A stretch of DNA of 64,000 nt from Guillardia theta CCMP2712 (lineage: Eukaryota > Protista > Cryptophyta). Positions 1 through 47,327 of the stretch are shown here, in pieces. The stretch covers positions 558,016 to 622,015 of the forward strand of contig NW_005434670.1 of NCBI RefSeq assembly GCF_000315625.1, written 5' to 3'. Under the pieces are notes generated by a model. That model saw nothing but the letters and a program-made list of their open reading frames with translations. It ran no database searches and had not been told where the DNA came from. Position 1 is the stretch's first letter. Every line of letters starts with the position of its first letter. Made by a program: the position numbers and the translations under genes.

Positions 1-2895
1 TCTTGTTAGACCTCCGAGGAGCGGCAGGCTCGCTCCTATCTAAGACTTCTCCCCTTCCTCCTCCTTCACTATGGGCTGAATTTCCTCCTCCTCCTGCATC
101 TTCAGCCGGTATCAGCAAAATCCCCCCACCCCACCACCACCACCACCACCTCCACCACCACCACCACCACCTCCACCACCACCACCACCACCTCCTCCTC
201 CTCCTCCTCCTCCTCTCCCTCTTCGCACGAACTCCTTCGCGTCTTCCTCTCTCTCCTCATCTCCCCCGCCTCCCTTCCCCTTCTCCCTTCACCTGGCTCG
301 CTCCCGCTGCCTTGAACTTCGGGTCCGGAAGGAGCGAGTCCAAACAGTCTGCGAGCACATAAGGAGCCTCCTCTTTCTGCTCGCCCTCACCTGGAGATTG
401 ATCCCCGTTGCTCCTCCTCTGGTCCACCGTCTTGATGTGACCGTAAAGCACCATCCCCAGAATCTGATGAGAGTGAGGAGAGGAGAGGAGGGGAAGAGGA
501 GGGATGGGAGGGGGAGGGGACAGGGGTGAGAAGCAGCGAGGAGGGAAGGAGAAGTCAGTGGCAGAGAGGAGGAAAGGAGGATAGGAGGAGAGAGGGCAGA
601 AGCGCGTGAGATGGTGAACGTGAAGGGAAGGGAGGGGAAGGGAAGGGAAGGAGGTGGAGGATAGCTACCGCTACGAACAAGCCGAAAAGATTCTTGATCT
701 CCTGCTTACAGCCATCAGTGGAGGAGAAGGAGGAGGAGAAGGCGAGGAGACGTTGGCGGAGAAGTAAGCGGGAGGGAAGAAGATGAAGCCGGAAGCCTGG
801 AGGAGCATGTGAGGGAGGGGGAGCAGAAGACAAGACGCGATCACGATGATCAGACAAGTCTTGGCATGCCCCACGACCTATCAAACGTCAGTGCCGGGTC
901 GGGAGTTTGCACGAGGGTGTCCAAGTCACCTGGAAAGTCACGGCCGACGTCTTTCCGATGAGGCCAAAGGACGTGACGTTCATCACCATCGCTATGAGGC
1001 AGGTAAGCACGATGAGCGCCACGTCCACTGCCAGCTGGGGTCAGAGCTGAAGGCAGAGAACAGGGGTAGCTGCGATCACCGTAGTTGGAGGAGAAGGTGT
1101 GCGAGGTAACGTTCTGCTGGGACAGTCAGCGGAGGTGACGAGCTGGGGGAGAGCTGGGGATCGACCGGCTCAACGACCACGACCGAGGCGAGCGTGATGA
1201 GCGTCTGACAGGCTCATGAGCTGTAAACCAATTGACACCGTCGGTCGGTACCTGGGGGAGGGCGATGCTGTGGGTGATCTGAATGGCAGAGAGACCGTGC
1301 TGCTTCTGCTTGCTCCCCTGCAGGTCCAGGACAAGCACAGGCGTCACCACCTTGTCTCCGAGATCCTCTAGCAGTCTACCTGCCACAGCTGGAACTGTGC
1401 CGTCGTCAACACTGCGATGACTGGAAGGAGGCATCAGGGATCTGAAGTCCTTCACGACCTCGCAACAACAAGCACAACGTCCCCGTCACAGGCACTTCAG
1501 GAGTCTCAGGGGGCACTCCAGCACAGGCAAGAGCAGCAGGCAGGACAAGGTCAGCTGCAGGACCTGCATACATGCACCCCTTCATGTTCAGCTGGATGTC
1601 AGTCACTGCCGGACCAGCTAGTCAGCGACCTCAGCACGTGCCGAGCTCTCACTCCACCTGTTGCGATCCCCACACCGGCAAGCAGCAGCCCGAGGCTGAG
1701 ACACCCGTTACCCACCACTGCCTTGACCCCTCCGACCCAACCTGATCAGCACGCGGTACGATACAGTCTTCCCCGACTTGGCGTACTCGATTCCCAGCAC
1801 CTGATCGAGCAACGTCATTGTCATGGAGCAGCATCGAAGGCGGCTGACCACAGGGATGATGCAGAGTTTGGTGATCTGATAGAACCCGACGGAGTTCGCC
1901 TGCCATAAGAATGATCCTTGTAGACAGGCAGTTGTGAAAGTCTCACTTGAAGGGAAAAGTTCATGAAGGCAATGGACAGAACTCCACAGAAGGCCGTAAG
2001 CCAGTTGTCTTTCTGAGCATGCAGGAATAAGGCATGGAAACGCCATGAAGGGAAGAAAAAGAGGAGAGGACAGGGGAGAAGAGCAGGGATGTGGAGAGAG
2101 AAGATGTGGCGGGAGATCGGGGGAGATGATGCGATGAGAGCCGGGGATCGAGCAGAAAGGAGGAGAGAGGAGACGATAGCAGGAGGATCTCCAAACCGTC
2201 TCCATGTGTTTCACTGATGACCCGAAGAGCTTGAACTGCGTGACCCCCTCGAGGAAGACGGTGGTCGCGATGAAGTGGCAGAGAGTCAAGCTGAGGACGA
2301 AAGTAAAACCGTACCTGCGAGGGAACATCAGCCGGCAAGATGGAGGAGGAAGCTGGAGGAGGGAGGAGGGAGGGGGAAGAAGAGGAGGGAGGAGGGAGGA
2401 GGGAGAAGGGAGAAGGGAGGAGGGAGAAGGGGAGGGAGGAGGAGGAGGGAAGGAGGATGCGCTCCTCCTTCTCGAGGAGGCTCACGCTGCTACTCAGCTC
2501 GGCTACAACACGGTCCGACGCTGCTAGACGCTAGGGAGCACCTGCTGTGANNNNNNNNNNNNNNNNNNNNNNNNNNNNNNNNNNNNNNNNNNNNNNNNNN
2601 NNNNNNNNNNNNNNNNNNNNNNNNNNNNNNNNNNNNNNNNNNNNNNNNNNNNNNNNNNNNNNNNNNNNNNNNNNNNNNNNNNNNNNNNNNNNNNNNNNNN
2701 NNNNNNNNNNNNNNNNNNNNNNNNNNNNNNNNNNNNNNNNNNNNNNNNNNNNNNTTACAAGCCCGCCCACATCGCCACCACCTGCGGTCGGCATGCAAGG
2801 AGGTCAGCCGGGAGCAAGAAGTTCACATGTGAAGAGACCAAGTTTGACGACATGGCGGGCTTCGACTCAGCAGGTGCGTCCGAACCTCCAGACAT
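1..2895 (-). CDS. Nucleotide-sugar transporter, UXT/SLC35E3-like (TPT/EamA superfamily); multi-exon, spans an N gap, 3' end near or beyond the window edge
   Basis: Exon peptides: MSGGSDAPAESKPAMSSNL, VVAMWAG, YGFTFVLSLTLCHF, ANSVGFYQITKLCIIPVV, GVGIAT-VTDIQLNMKG, QGSKQKQHGLSAIQI, GHAKTCLI, LGMVLYGHIK. NSVGFYQxxKL and GHxKT are characteristic of UXT/SLC35E3. Boundaries approximate. Confidence 0.85.
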
Positions 2896-19549: not shown

Positions 19550-21119
19550 ATGGCGGGAGGACCGACGGGAGGCGAAGTGGAGGAGAGGCAGCGGAGCGAC
19601 ATGAGCAGCTTGCCGAGCCACTATGATGCCTGTTGCACAGAGAGGAGGAGCGCTCGAGACGAGGTTGATGGCATCGAGAGCTCTCGTGGGGAGCGATTGC
19701 TGACTTTTTTGTGCAGTCGCGCCGAGTCAAGCTTGTGCTGTCCTGCGGGATCCTGCTGACCGCCCTTTTCCTTCTGGTGACGATTGTGGTTCAGCAAAGG
19801 TACGAGTATGACCTGATGGTGACTGGAGCGCCTCACGGCTGTGATTGCAGCCATGGACAGCGAGCGTACTTGGAAGAGGATCTTTCTGCTCTAGGTGACC
19901 CAACGAAGGTATTTGCTGTTGCTTCATGGAGAAAACCTCATGTGAGGCGTTTGAACCAGTCGAGCTCTTCTTCTATCAGACAGCTTGCTGACGAGCGGAT
20001 CAATCACTGGATGCAGCTCAAGCTGCCCAACCTGGATGCCAACTTCTTGGATAGCGCAGGCCGTCGAGGATCTAGCTCCCGCCCTGTTCCGATGTCCCAT
20101 GCAAGTAGCTCGGAAGATTTTCAGGAGGAGAGAAAGAAGATGAGGGAAGAGATGATCAAGTCGTTCTCAAGGAAGGCTGAAGAGAGCACTGCAGAGGCTC
20201 TTTCTTCCCAAGGCTCAAACAGCATGACCTTTCCTACTTTAAGTGGAATGGAAGGTACTTCCCAGCACTACGTTGTCCCGACAATATCTCCCCCGGAAGA
20301 GGTAAGGACGCGCTGGTTCACCTTTCTTATCCTCCCTCGTTTTCTCTTGCTCTTCCTACTTGATGCGATCATCTTCCTCCTGATTTGATGGCATCCTGTG
20401 GTTGATTCTGTGGGTCAGGCACAGGCATCGCGTTCCAGGACAAGAGAGCATGCAAGCCGACTACAAGCATCTGCTCTTGCCTCCAAGAGGAAAGAGGATG
20501 CTTCAGCGTCAGCGTTCGTTGGAGGAAAGTTCAGCTCGAAAGCAAGCAGCATTGTTGATGACCTCATCTCAAAGTCCCTGGTCATCTCAAAGTCCCTTGG
20601 AAAGAGCGACCAGAGCTTGAAGCGCAATGCTCTCAACAGGATCCAAGCCTACCATCAAGCAGTGAGCAGCAGTGGGAGCAGCAGCAATGTTATTCATTAT
20701 CCGGGGGAGAATTCAGATCGGTCAGACAAGCCAGAGACGAAGAGATTTGCCAGGAGTCCGAGAGAGCATCTCGACGAAGGAGATAGCACGAGTGGAGGGG
20801 TGAGTACACGGGCACCCGATCTGGCGATACAGCTTACGCCGATCTTCAGGTGCAGGACCATCTCTTTGATCTCTACACAAGCAACAAGAATGCACAATCT
20901 TATCTAAACCAGGATGGAGGACGTCATAGAGGTAGTAGGATGTCTATCAACAACCTCTCTGACTCCGGTACAGGCATGGCTCAACTCTCAGCTCCCGCTA
21001 GCGTTGCCATGGCCTCCTCCAGAGATGACGTGGACACCGATGGAGGAGGGGGGGATCCGTTCAACAATGCCCTTTTCAACATTGTTCACGATTGCTCCCT
21101 CGGTGGACCAACTTGCTGA
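19550..21119 (+). CDS. Hypothetical protein with N-terminal transmembrane segment; multi-exon
   Basis: Consecutive ORFs (19711-20388, 20398-20907, 20850-21119) separated by short intron-like gaps. Hydrophobic stretch LVLSCGILLTALFLLVTIVV. Confidence 0.5.
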
Positions 21120-21395
21120 TGTTTCAATCTGTATAGAATTCTTTACAACACTACGATCGTTACGTGCTTGCCATCAAAGCTCCAATCACTCCTTCTCACC
21201 TGACATCCCTCCCAATACAGCTGGAGGACAAACTAGAGAGGAAGTTCAACTCTCTCACCCTCGACGATTACATCAACAGCGCTCTCCCTCAGTCTCAAGT
21301 CATCGCTCCTTTCTTCTCATAAACCTTCTTGCTACATGCTTTCTCTTGGTACACCTCAACTCCTGACTCTCGCCAAGACCACTCTCCCTGCTCCC

Positions 21396-21442
21396 AGGCC
21401 AGACGGATTCGAACCGCCCCCCTCGCGCCCTAGCGCTGGCCC
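21396..21442 (-). ncRNA. Miniature tRNA-like (mascRNA-like) element downstream of histone H3
   Basis: Minus strand reads GGGCCA-GCGC TAGG GCGC-GAGGGG-GGCGG TTCGAAT CCGTC-TGGCCT: 6-bp acceptor-like stem, 4-bp GG-loop hairpin, 5-bp T-stem with canonical T-loop, no anticodon arm. Confidence 0.7.
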
Positions 21443-21452
21443 TTGTGTGTTT

Positions 21453-21468
21453 GGTGTTGATGAACACC
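21453..21468 (-). promoter_or_regulatory. Histone mRNA 3' stem-loop (H3)
   Basis: GGTGTT-CATC-AACACC (6-bp stem, 4-nt loop) followed by an AC-rich flank, 38 nt after the H3 stop codon. Confidence 0.8.
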
Positions 21469-21506
21469 TGTATCTTGGTTCCTTGACCGTCTCGTCGTCC
21501 TCGAGC

Positions 21507-21971
<465 letters not shown>

Positions 21972-22000
21972 TTAGATCGGAGGCAGGGACAGGTGTGTTT

Positions 22001-22943
22001 CAAGGACCCTACGAGGAGACCAGGGAAAATAAGGCAAATCAGGGGGTACAGGTGTGCAGGGTGATAAAGACACGGGTGGAAGAGAATAGGAGGGAGGGGG
22101 TGAGGAGGAGGTGGGGAGAGAAAAAAAAAGAAATGACCCCCTACCCAGAAGACTACAGGAGAAAAGGCAGGGGAAAGGAGGTAGGGTAGGGACAAAGTAG
22201 GGGAGCACCGGGTGGGCATAGGAGAAACACAGGAGATGGAAGAAGGGTGGGTGGGGATTTGAGTTTCCGAATACCACCGGTGCCTAATGAGATCAAAAGA
22301 GGAGAGGTGGGTGGGGACGATGGAAAACAAGAGCTTCAAGGACCGGGTCTATCACAAGAAATAGGTGTGAAATCAGGTGGTAGGGGTAGTAGATCACCAA
22401 TTCAAACACAACTGGTCTGATGAGCCGGAATTTTTGAATGGATCTGATCACCCCTACCCCCTCATTCCCACCTTCAGAAAGACAAAATACCCGGTTCTCA
22501 ACAGTGCACCCCACCCCACCCTGCTTGCAACACCTGTGTTTCTCCTATTATCTACTACCCCTACCACCTGATTTCACACCTATTTCTTGTGATAGACCCG
22601 GTCCTTGAAGCTCTTGTTTTCCATCGTCCCCACCCACCTCTCCTCTTTTGATCTCATTAGGCACCGGTGGTATACGGAAACTCAAATCCCCACCCACTCT
22701 TCTTCCATCTCCTGTGTTTCTCCTATGCCCACCCGGTGCTCCCCTACTTTGTCCCTACCCTACCTCCTTTCCCCTGCCTTATCTCCTGTAGTCTTCTGGG
22801 TAGGGGGTCATTTCTTTTTTTTTCTCTCCCCACCTCCTCCTCACCCCCTCCCTCCTATTCTCTTCCACCCGTGTCTTTATCACCCTGCACACCTGTACCC
22901 CCTGATTTGCCTTATTTTCCCTGGTCTCCTCGTAGGGTCCTTG
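22001..22943. repeat. Long inverted repeat upstream of H3: arms ~22001-22394 and ~22550-22943, ~155-nt spacer, right arm cut by an N gap
   Basis: caaggaccctacgaggagaccag...ggggtagtagat recurs as its reverse complement with a few substitutions. Mirror ORFs 21950-22339(-) and 22605-23075(+). Confidence 0.95.
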
Positions 22944-23043
22944 NNNNNNNNNNNNNNNNNNNNNNNNNNNNNNNNNNNNNNNNNNNNNNNNNNNNNNNNN
23001 NNNNNNNNNNNNNNNNNNNNNNNNNNNNNNNNNNNNNNNNNNN

Positions 23044-27719: not shown

Positions 27720-28500
27720 GTCGGCGGGCCGAGCACCCGGTGGCACCGTACGGTACTGACAACGGGGCCCGGGGCCCGCCGCCGGTGGCGCCCCCCCCCG
27801 CACCGGGCCCCGGCCGGGCCCGGGCCGGGCGGGGCGGCCGGGGCGCGCGGCGGGCGCCGGTCCGTCGGCGCCGCCGACGGACCCGAAGTACGGTTCCTGG
27901 CCCGGGCTTCTACACGGTACGGTACTAGAACGGAGTCCTTCAAGTCCCGCCCGGCCACTGAGTGGGGGGCTGGCCTGCCGGGTCCAGAGAGCTCAATTCA
28001 CCGGCGGCGGCCGCCACTGTGCTTGCCTGCTTGACCGTGCCAGTGACAGTCCGGCACTGAGTAGGGCCTAGGGGCCGCCGGGCCGCTGAGGCTCCGAGCC
28101 GGGCGGCCCGTGACCGTACAGTGCGGCGGCCGCCGGCCGGGCCGGCGGCCGGGCCGCCAGCCTGGCCCCCGCCACAGTGCGCCGCCGGGCACACTGTCGG
28201 ACCGTCCGGTGGGTGTCGGAGTCCGACCGACGGTCCGCCGGACGGTGGCACCGTGTAGGGGCCAGTCGGACTGAGTCACTGGGTAAATTAGTAGAGAGGC
28301 CCGGCATGGATCGGACTGAGTCCTTGGCAACGGTTGAACCGTGGCGCCCGGGCCGGGCCGGGACACGCGCCGCCCGGCCGCGGCGCCGGGCGGCGGCGGC
28401 CCGGCAGTCGTACAGGCTCCACCGGGCAGACGGCGGCGCCGTGCCACTGAACTTCCGAAGCAGCAGGCCGCAGCATACCTTTTCGATGCCAAAGGCCAGG
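27720..28500. repeat. GC-rich, palindrome-dense intergenic island; related islands at ~37010-37600 and 40140-40420/44100-44160
   Basis: Dense CCGG/GGCC/CCCGGG runs with recurrent CCGTAC, GTGCCACT and GGCACTG words. No credible coding signal. Confidence 0.6.
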
Positions 28501-46859: not shown

Positions 46860-46906
46860 TTCGATCAGGAGCGGACTCGAACCACTCAGTTTCCAAACTG
46901 ATCAAA
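46860..46906 (-). ncRNA. Miniature tRNA-like (mascRNA-like) element downstream of the histone H1-like gene
   Basis: Minus strand reads TTTGATCAG-TTTGGAAACT-GAGTGG TTCGAGT CCGCTC-CTGATCGAA: 6-9-bp acceptor-like stem, short GG-containing linker or hairpin, T-arm with canonical loop. Confidence 0.7.
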
Positions 46907-46911
46907 TTGGT

Positions 46912-46926
46912 GGTGTTAATAACACC
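46912..46926 (-). promoter_or_regulatory. Histone mRNA 3' stem-loop (H1-like)
   Basis: GGTGTT-ATT-AACACC followed by ACCAA, 59 nt after the stop codon. The stem is identical to that of H3. Confidence 0.78.
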
Positions 46927-46985
46927 AGTTCGAGCTCCTTGTGTCAAGTAACGTAGGGGCCACGAAGCAATCGCACTGGCTGAAT

Positions 46986-47327
46986 TTACTTTTTCGTCGC
47001 CTTGGTGGTGGCAGTCTTCTTCGCAGCAGTCGCCTTCTTAGCAGGGGACTTCTTGGGCTTGGCAGCTGCCTTGGTCGCCTTGGGGGCCTTCTCGGCCTTG
47101 GGCTTGGTGACCTTGGGGGCCTTCTCAGCCTTGGGCTTAGTAGCCTTAGGGGCCTTAGTGGCAGTCTTCTTGGCGGGAGACTTCTTGGGGGCAGCGGTCT
47201 TCTTGGGGGCAGCAGCCTTCTTAGCGGGGCTCTTCTTGGGCTTGGTGGCCGCAGTCTTCTTGACAGCAGTAGCCTTCTTCGCGGGACTCTTGGCCTTGGG
47301 GGCTGCTGCTGCTTTCTTGGGCGGCAT
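46986..47327 (-). CDS. Lys/Ala/Pro-rich histone H1-like protein lacking a globular domain
   Basis: 113 aa MPPKKAAAAPKAKSPAKK... with repeated (K)KSPAKK CDK-type sites. Carries a histone stem-loop in its 3' UTR. A splice acceptor (tgtag) lies 3 nt before the ATG. Confidence 0.8.
   Translation of the reverse strand: MPPKKAAAAPKAKSPAKKATAVKKTAATKPKKSPAKKAAAPKKTAAPKKSPAKKTATKAPKATKPKAEKAPKVTKPKAEKAPKATKAAAKPKKSPAKKATAAKKTATTKATKK

Follow-up and report, generated by a model that had tools for sequence, protein, structure and literature searches.

How does a replication-type histone gene of the cryptophyte Guillardia theta end its messenger RNA? The question is raised by a histone H3 gene behind which lie, in succession, a hairpin of histone type, a short spacer and a 47-nt element that resembles part of a tRNA. 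The original prediction had set out these three parts in this order, and all of their bases agree with the minus strand of the window, by which we mean the whole 64,000-nucleotide stretch that was analysed (contig 4, bases 558016-622015). Genome searches covered the assembly of 87.1 Mb in 669 contigs. Features and coordinates are collected in Table 1.

The element, or mimic, consists of an acceptor stem, a short D-like hairpin and a canonical T arm, and has no anticodon arm. The H3 copy encodes no CCA in the DNA and has no T-run downstream, and at the DNA level its acceptor end is not a transcript end. Its T arm holds a perfect B-box consensus. The 3' end of the H3 mRNA is predicted to fall at or inside the spacer, 21443-21452.

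Table 1. Cassette features behind the two cassette-bearing genes of the window, and contigs that carry histone genes with the cassette
Feature	Position	Strand	Basis or remark
Histone H3 coding sequence, 136 aa, stop included	21507..21917	minus	ORF list; Pfam Histone 157.9 bits
3' UTR linker from stop codon to hairpin, 38 nt	21469..21506	minus	window sequence
Histone-type stem-loop GGTGTT-CATC-AACACC, 6 bp and 4-nt loop	21453..21468	minus	window sequence
A/C-rich spacer AAACACACAA, 10 nt	21443..21452	minus	window sequence
tRNA-like element, 47 nt, GGGCCA/GCGC-TAGG-GCGC/GAGGGG/GGCGG-TTCGAAT-CCGTC/TGGCCT	21396..21442	minus	
Mimic acceptor 5' strand GGGCCA	21437-21442	minus	
Mimic D-like hairpin GCGC-TAGG-GCGC	21425-21436 (loop TAGG 21429-21432)	minus	
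Mimic linker GAGGGG	21419-21424	minus	
Mimic T stem 5' strand GGCGG	21414-21418	minus	
Mimic T loop TTCGAAT	21407-21413	minus	
Mimic T stem 3' strand CCGTC	21402-21406	minus	
Mimic acceptor 3' strand TGGCCT	21396-21401	minus	
H1-like gene, 113 aa, lysine/alanine/proline-rich	46986..47327	minus	second cassette gene in window
H1-like cassette	46861..46927	minus	hairpin, spacer and mimic
H1-like hairpin (T)GGTGTT-ATT-AACACC(A)	46911-46927	minus	
H1-like spacer CCAAT, then mimic with T loop TTCGAGT	mimic 46861-46905	minus	
H3 genes with cassette	contigs 4, 16		
H4 genes with cassette	contigs 32, 89, 39		
H2A genes with cassette	contigs 32, 79		
H2B genes with cassette	contig 14 (four), contig 49 (one)		

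Comparison with known RNA families places the cassette in none of them. At gathering thresholds, Rfam returned nothing for the whole window. An E-value scan of 151 nt gave a weak match of the hairpin to Histone3 (RF00032; 11.7 bits, E 2.4, below the gathering score of 34) and, besides it, two chance matches only. This score rules out membership of the Rfam histone stem-loop family, while the histone geometry originally claimed for the hairpin is borne out by its 6-bp stem, its 4-nt loop and the sub-threshold match; the hairpin stands 38 nt after the H3 stop codon, and 12 other genes have a hairpin of the same geometry. No match to the mascRNA-menRNA family (RF01684) was listed at E<=10 when the 151 nt were compared with all Rfam families, which we take to include RF01684. 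Membership of that family by sequence is ruled out at this level, and the resemblance is one of mechanism only.

Identity as a tRNA is likewise ruled out, since the anticodon arm is absent, the Rfam tRNA family (RF00005) does not match the element, and ARAGORN called no tRNA at the window copy, as had been foreseen, or on 22 loci with copies. The one ARAGORN call in the window, a 94-nt "tRNA-Ala(ggc)" at 27817-27910, lies in GC-rich simple sequence, has no Rfam support and is probably a false positive. A Pol III terminator, taken as at least four T just downstream, is absent from the window copy and from most others; an exception is the H2A gene on contig 32, with TTTT after its mimic. The lack of a T-run after most copies argues against a Pol III gene, as does the missing tRNA call, and by the terminator the element does not qualify as one, in agreement with the case first made against an independent Pol III gene.

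Taken by itself, the window copy is statistically unremarkable and has no significant structure. Its minimum free energy fold contains the hairpin, the acceptor stem and the D-like hairpin, but the RNA fold z-score is only -1.46, with 16 of 200 shuffles folding equally well. When the 36 nt 5' of the T stem were shuffled, an 11-bp stack of acceptor and T stems was regained in 530 of 2000 cases (26%), because the shuffled part is G-rich. The hairpin pattern has a chance expectation of 0.1 per window. Covariance models give the window copy 50-61 bits, a score to be read with its presence in their training sets. Since the single copy is unremarkable, the case rests on comparison, that is, on recurrence and covariation.

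Hairpin and mimic recur in the same genome behind 13 canonical histone genes: two H3, three H4, two H2A, five H2B and one H1-like. These genes were gathered by a hairpin pattern search, a Pfam histone search, an H4 protein search and three rounds of covariance-model search. The H1-like protein, with 113 residues, has no Pfam match. Its mimic scores 17.4 bits (E 0.06 over the window) with model R2, which was not trained on this copy, and 32.3 bits genome-wide with model R3, whose training alignment A6 included it. The consensus hairpin, (U)GGUGUY and RACACC(A) around a loop of 3-5 nt, is found 27-112 nt after the stop codon. Among paralogues and relatives the spacer from hairpin to mimic, often A/C-rich, measures 1-13 nt (20 in one copy); within this genome the distance is 1-10 nt. 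The mimic itself measures 42-50 nt, and comprises an acceptor stem of 5-7 bp whose 3' strand directly abuts the T stem, a D-like hairpin of 2-4 bp with the loop UGGU, a linker of 4-7 nt, and a T stem of 5-6 bp closed by the T loop UUCGAnU. The coaxial stack of acceptor and T stems is 11-13 bp long, mostly 12.

The sequences between and around these parts have diverged far more than the parts themselves. Paralogues are 75-100% identical in the hairpin and 60-96% in the mimic, as against 13-67% in the UTR, spacer and flank; over the 30 nt that precede the hairpin, identity is 13-63%. Two of the H2B copies on contig 14 illustrate this, with identities of 13% in the UTR, 100% in the hairpin, 17% in the spacer, 96% in the mimic and 52% downstream. 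Conservation falls right after the acceptor 3' strand.

The module is restricted mainly to canonical histone genes. Over the 260-400 nt inspected downstream, no cassette follows the H3 variant that has an intron, the H3-domain fusion, the cenH3-like gene, one of the H2A genes or two of the H4 genes, and AATAAA is present in two of the cassette-less histone genes. Both cassette-less H4 genes lie on contig 58 (181437-181742 and 230183-230491); one of them ends in GFGS with AATAAA downstream, the other shares only 80% identity with canonical H4, and on their sequences the two are candidates for replication-independent genes. A cell-cycle study of Guillardia theta found that nuclear H2A mRNA accumulates in S phase and counted four nuclear H2A genes (PMC5443833), a number compatible with the histone census of this genome.

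Among the best 150 candidates per genome scan with models R1, R2 and R3, at least two copies of the mimic lie outside histone genes. One (contig 39:390392-390437, minus strand, 52-57 bits) is found some 260 nt beyond the stop codon of an open reading frame for a DEAD-box helicase of DDX6/Dhh1 type, and is directly preceded by a 7-bp hairpin, GGGGAGG-TAAAC-CCTCTCC, which is not the histone stem. The other (contig 145:51850-51892, plus strand, 40-46 bits) has neither a histone gene nor an obvious hairpin of histone type upstream. The module may also serve non-histone mRNAs. Two identical 24-bit matches, at contigs 5:983755 (plus strand) and 85:125704 (minus strand), belong to a repeat with a GGGGG-TTCGACT-CCCCC arm; one of them lies beside an assembly gap, and the repeat is possibly tRNA-derived.

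MAFFT alignments of the copies left the acceptor strands out of register, and the covariance models R1, R2 and R3 were therefore used. Covariation was counted in 30 copies aligned to model R2, and the counts should be read with the leaning of a model-fitted alignment towards structure. Standard pairs fill 98.4% of cells, compared with 34-49% once the 3' partners are shifted by 1-3 columns; both sides have changed in 13 of the 16 pairs (95 cells); and the covariation score is 0.59 as against 0.06-0.10. None of 500 shuffles reached the observed values. RNAalifold, applied to the gappy model alignment, recovered the T arm alone. Acceptor, D-like and T helices are thus maintained by compensatory changes, which upholds the view of the 47-nt element as a tRNA mimic.

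Among the unpaired bases, the D-like loop keeps its UGG(U) and the T loop its UUCGA-U, invariant or nearly so. In tRNA, the GG region of the D loop and bases of the T loop build the elbow. Because the conserved unpaired bases of the mimic are the elbow bases of tRNA, the data fit the idea, already put forward in the original prediction, that the GG of the D-like loop touches the T loop, with the UAGG of the window copy as a variant: it departs from the UGGU consensus, and the orthologue with a 98% identical coding sequence has UGGG. The element's anatomy, its conservation and its covariation are matters of direct observation and, judged by comparison of the copies, it is a genuine conserved tRNA mimic.

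The same module occurs in environmental sequence, in at least 13 histone contigs with hairpin and mimic. An exact-protein look-up of the window H3 led to two environmental contigs. The first, with a coding sequence 98% identical, has the same cassette, in which a T-stem G.U has become G-C and the D-like loop reads UGGG, while the downstream flank has diverged. In the second, 89% identical in the coding sequence, the hairpin and an A-rich spacer are followed by a minihelix whose acceptor and T stems are wholly different. A metagenome scan with a loose hairpin-plus-T-loop pattern gave 93 stretches, of which 80 were returned as loci; H2A, H2B, H3 or H4 frames lay within 500 nt of 13 distinct matches (tblastn), and the modules behind the H2A, H2B and H3 genes have unrelated stem sequences. 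When an uninterrupted stack of at least 11 bp was demanded, 8 of the 13 histone-linked matches passed, compared with 5 of 54 that had no histone frame, and each of those five is either a truncated contig that carries the same module or a real tRNA. About 50 of the pattern matches were set aside as bacterial coding sequence or real tRNAs, different from the histone module. A scan of viral contigs gave six matches, all by chance and all in phage-like open reading frames.

A further set of contigs was free of any pattern, being selected solely for encoding one H3 protein, one residue different, from a scanned contig. It comprised 10 places with 6 distinct sequences, on contigs of up to 151 kb, and in all ten a hairpin and an element bearing a T loop follow 50-140 nt after the stop codon. 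Model R3 detects the mimic in six of the ten (E<=0.011); the other four form one allele group with a longer element that carries an insertion. Two of the contigs have a compensatory change in the hairpin itself, which reads UAGUGU...ACACUA. In one group of environmental H3 contigs (L149, L151, L156 and L158, at about 1255-1375), the hairpin is followed by an element of about 105 nt that has one more hairpin inside it and a T loop of non-canonical sequence, TCCGAAC, and so comes nearer to a full cloverleaf; this form may be an intermediate or an expanded version. On contig L155, an environmental H3 gene has upstream of it, on the other strand, a second mimic of 34 bits (252-299, minus strand), which suggests a divergent histone gene pair with one cassette per gene.

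Transcript evidence comes from sequencing runs designated X1, X2, X6 and X17. The contigs of the first three are RNA-derived, for they have removed a 42-nt GT..AG intron (20930-20971) of the plus-strand neighbour. Their spans across hairpin and mimic are 20972-21558 in X1, 21259-21935 in X2 and 21294-21482 in X6; they continue 100-137 nt or more past the mimic, at a mean depth like that of coding-sequence contigs. The X2 contig holds the H3 coding sequence, the hairpin, the mimic and 137 nt beyond in one piece, so the mimic is co-transcribed with H3. Uncut or read-through RNA therefore exists, and it may be abundant. The outcome named from the start as adverse was an H3 mRNA running through the element to a poly(A) site; passage through the element is indeed seen in these three runs, but no poly(A) site was seen in the contigs that cross hairpin and mimic. 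As the contigs provide neither ends nor ratios, and the libraries may be poly(A)+ or total, efficient cleavage is neither proven nor excluded.

In run X17, for which raw reads were used, sparse 60-nt reads cover the neighbour to a depth of 5-13 and the H3 UTR and mimic to about 0. A pile of X17 reads at 21511-21557 was assigned to another H3 gene, having two fixed mismatches and loose ends on both sides. The depth of H3 lies below that of the neighbouring gene in four of four runs, a weak hint of poly(A) selection against a tail-less mRNA.

Some irregularities of the locus were noted alongside. For the convergent neighbour, the X2 and X6 contigs stop at 21149, which leaves about 250 nt to the end of the mimic. 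At 21216-21258, in the intergenic region between H3 and its neighbour, X1 and X2 share an alternative sequence (21 substitutions and four indel places in X1; X2 diverges at 21259), which is an allele or an assembly error. The X2 contig also leaves the window sequence at 21935, 18 nt upstream of the H3 ATG. The region upstream of H3 lies in an inverted repeat (21950-22339 and 22605-22990) beside a run of N, and may represent a collapsed or mis-joined divergent histone gene pair.

Candidate machinery is encoded in the genome. The RNA-binding domain of SLBP (PF15247) gives matches of 30.2 and 31.3 bits (cut-off 27) over profile positions 2-27 of 70, its N-terminal half; the rest of the SLBP-like domain falls across an unresolved intron, and a C-terminal-like stretch picked by eye has no profile match. 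Genome profile searches also found a PRORP gene (contig 100:26975-27586, 97.7 bits) and a POP1 domain (29.3 bits). U7 snRNA had no match in the genome, an uninformative absence given how short and divergent U7 is, and the same holds for nuclear RNase P RNA, for which the search control also matched nowhere. As to a downstream purine-rich element, purine richness is inconsistent across the histone genes.

Taken together, the element is best explained, on comparative grounds, as a 3'-end formation module of the replication-type histone genes in this lineage. Our main reading, to which we give a probability of roughly 0.6, is that the mimic is a cutting site for RNase P, perhaps also for RNase Z, so that the mRNA is left with its end directly behind the hairpin, in the manner of MALAT1 and mascRNA. 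The 3' ends of both MALAT1 and NEAT1_2 arise by RNase P cleavage at a tRNA-like structure. What RNase P recognises in its substrate, in common with RNase Z and the CCA-adding enzyme, is a stack of acceptor and T arm of about 12 bp together with the elbow, and the anticodon arm is dispensable for all three. The mimic has the corresponding features of a minimal RNase P and RNase Z substrate: a stack of about 12 bp, a 7-nt T loop of the form UUCRANY and a GG in the D-like loop.

How the cut is made, by which enzyme, and what becomes of the small RNA we infer as follows. RNA polymerase II would transcribe across the hairpin and the mimic, and the hairpin would presumably be bound by the SLBP-like protein. 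The mimic would then fold into its acceptor/T-arm stack of 11-13 bp, with an elbow formed by D loop and T loop, and in this shape could be recognised by RNase P, either PRORP or a POP1-containing enzyme, and by RNase Z. RNase P would cut at the 5' base of the acceptor stem, between 21443 and 21442, to yield a non-polyadenylated mRNA that ends 1-13 nt past the hairpin and is possibly trimmed later, and RNase Z would free a small RNA of about 45 nt. Cleavage by RNase P is favoured because of the stack and elbow, the presence of PRORP, a POP1 domain and part of an SLBP-like domain, the position of the mimic where the U7-binding element would stand, and the short, variable spacer, which looks like a tRNA leader or cleavage junction. 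The main evidence against this model is provided by the read-through contigs.

Those contigs bear on the other readings too. A single contig piece with coding sequence, hairpin and mimic would equally suit an mRNA that keeps its mimic, in which RNase Z or another nuclease cuts on the 3' side only and the message ends in the hairpin plus a tRNA-like cap, perhaps CCA-tailed, that would stabilise the mRNA or promote its translation as do the 3' structures of plant RNA viruses. The structure offers RNase Z and the CCA-adding enzyme their determinants no less than it does RNase P, and the drop of conservation directly after the acceptor 3' strand agrees with a cut there. The same contigs, however, run 100-137 nt beyond the mimic and so show no end at that place either; a full acceptor/T stack with its elbow should be a substrate of RNase P as well; the junction-like spacer of 1-13 nt would go unexplained; and the hairpin would become internal, contrary to every SLBP system known to us. 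We consider a retained cap unlikely. Less probable still, and by a clear step, is an action at the level of DNA, in which the B-box-like GGTTCGAATCC binds TFIIIC, as an "extra TFIIIC" site, and blocks or terminates RNA polymerase II behind histone genes, or in which the element is a Pol III mini-gene. The perfect B-box consensus in the T arm would suit such a site, as would the placing of histone genes near convergent neighbours, with the RNA of the next gene ending about 250 nt away. A DNA site nevertheless fails to explain the compensatory changes in the acceptor and D-like stems or the constant stack of 11-13 bp, a mini-gene would lack its T-run terminator in most copies, and one contig joins the element to the H3 coding sequence.

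That the element is a functionless relic, a decaying tRNA pseudogene or a tRNA-derived repeat that happens to lie behind H3, is hardly credible. It could draw on the lack of significant structure in the window copy alone and on the two weak, identical copies of a T-arm-bearing repeat elsewhere in the genome. Yet 13 histone genes, of five classes, are followed by the element with differing stem sequences, and relatives preserve it where the flanks have diverged. Covariation of the stems, the conserved islands and the H3-selected contigs of relatives effectively refute this explanation.

Should cleavage by RNase P hold, a broader proposal follows, over which we are evenly divided: that the whole lineage has replaced the U7 snRNP step with an anticodon-less mimic cut by RNase P or PRORP, each histone transcript yielding a tRNA-like RNA of about 45 nt. 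The lineage would then comprise cryptophyte-like algae and environmental relatives whose histone mRNAs end in an SLBP-type hairpin. The mimic in the 3' UTR of the helicase gene would, if its role is the same, make the device a general one for poly(A)-independent 3' ends of nuclear mRNAs.

Among protists, histone hairpins and SLBP are widespread, but little is known of the machinery that cleaves histone mRNAs outside animals. The literature searched (full text) describes no tRNA-like element behind histone genes. In a 2026 survey of histone hairpins and SLBP in 310 protists, the words tRNA, RNase P and cryptophyte are absent (bioRxiv 10.64898/2026.10.14.759114). If the mimic is a cleavage signal, these would be, among the literature searched, the first nuclear protein-coding mRNAs with 3' ends made by RNase P; the solution of MALAT1, a structure plus a tRNA mimic, would have arisen independently for histones; and a compact module of about 75 nt for non-polyadenylated mRNAs would be at hand.

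The cassette combines traits of several known systems. In metazoans, processing of replication-dependent histone mRNAs involves the stem-loop, SLBP, a downstream element, the U7 snRNP and CPSF73. The module described here is like that system in its hairpin of 6 bp and 4 nt, placed 27-112 nt after the stop codon, in its use by canonical and not by variant genes, and in the SLBP-like domain encoded in the genome; the division of animal histone genes into stem-loop and poly(A) types is mirrored by that between canonical and replacement genes. It differs in the stem, GGUGUU/AACACC in place of the metazoan GGCUCU/AGAGCC, and in that the tRNA mimic stands where animals carry the purine-rich element that binds U7. 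In plant mitochondria, RNase P makes mRNA 3' ends at t-elements. These elements and tRNA punctuation, tRNA-like folds that flank mRNAs, share with the present module the use of RNase P and RNase Z signals in defining mRNA ends, but they belong to polycistronic organellar transcripts, whereas here a histone hairpin accompanies the mimic in monocistronic transcripts of nuclear genes. Plant RNA viruses such as TYMV and BMV likewise have a tRNA mimic, a 3' tRNA-like structure, at the end of a coding RNA; these structures stay terminal, end in CCA and are aminoacylated, in contrast to the H3 mimic of the window, for which no CCA is encoded.

The closest likeness is to MALAT1 and NEAT1_2 (MEN beta) of vertebrates with their mascRNA and menRNA. 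Each is a transcript of RNA polymerase II without poly(A), in which a tRNA-like fold comes directly after a protective 3' structure; the upstream RNA receives its 3' end from RNase P, and the small tRNA-like RNA is released by RNase Z together with CCA addition. The layout in Guillardia matches that logic, here read from sequence with cleavage as the predicted step. It does so with a histone-type hairpin where MALAT1 has a triple helix, with a mimic of 42-50 nt that has no anticodon arm in place of a mascRNA of about 60 nt, and in the protein-coding histone mRNAs of a protist, as a multigene system.
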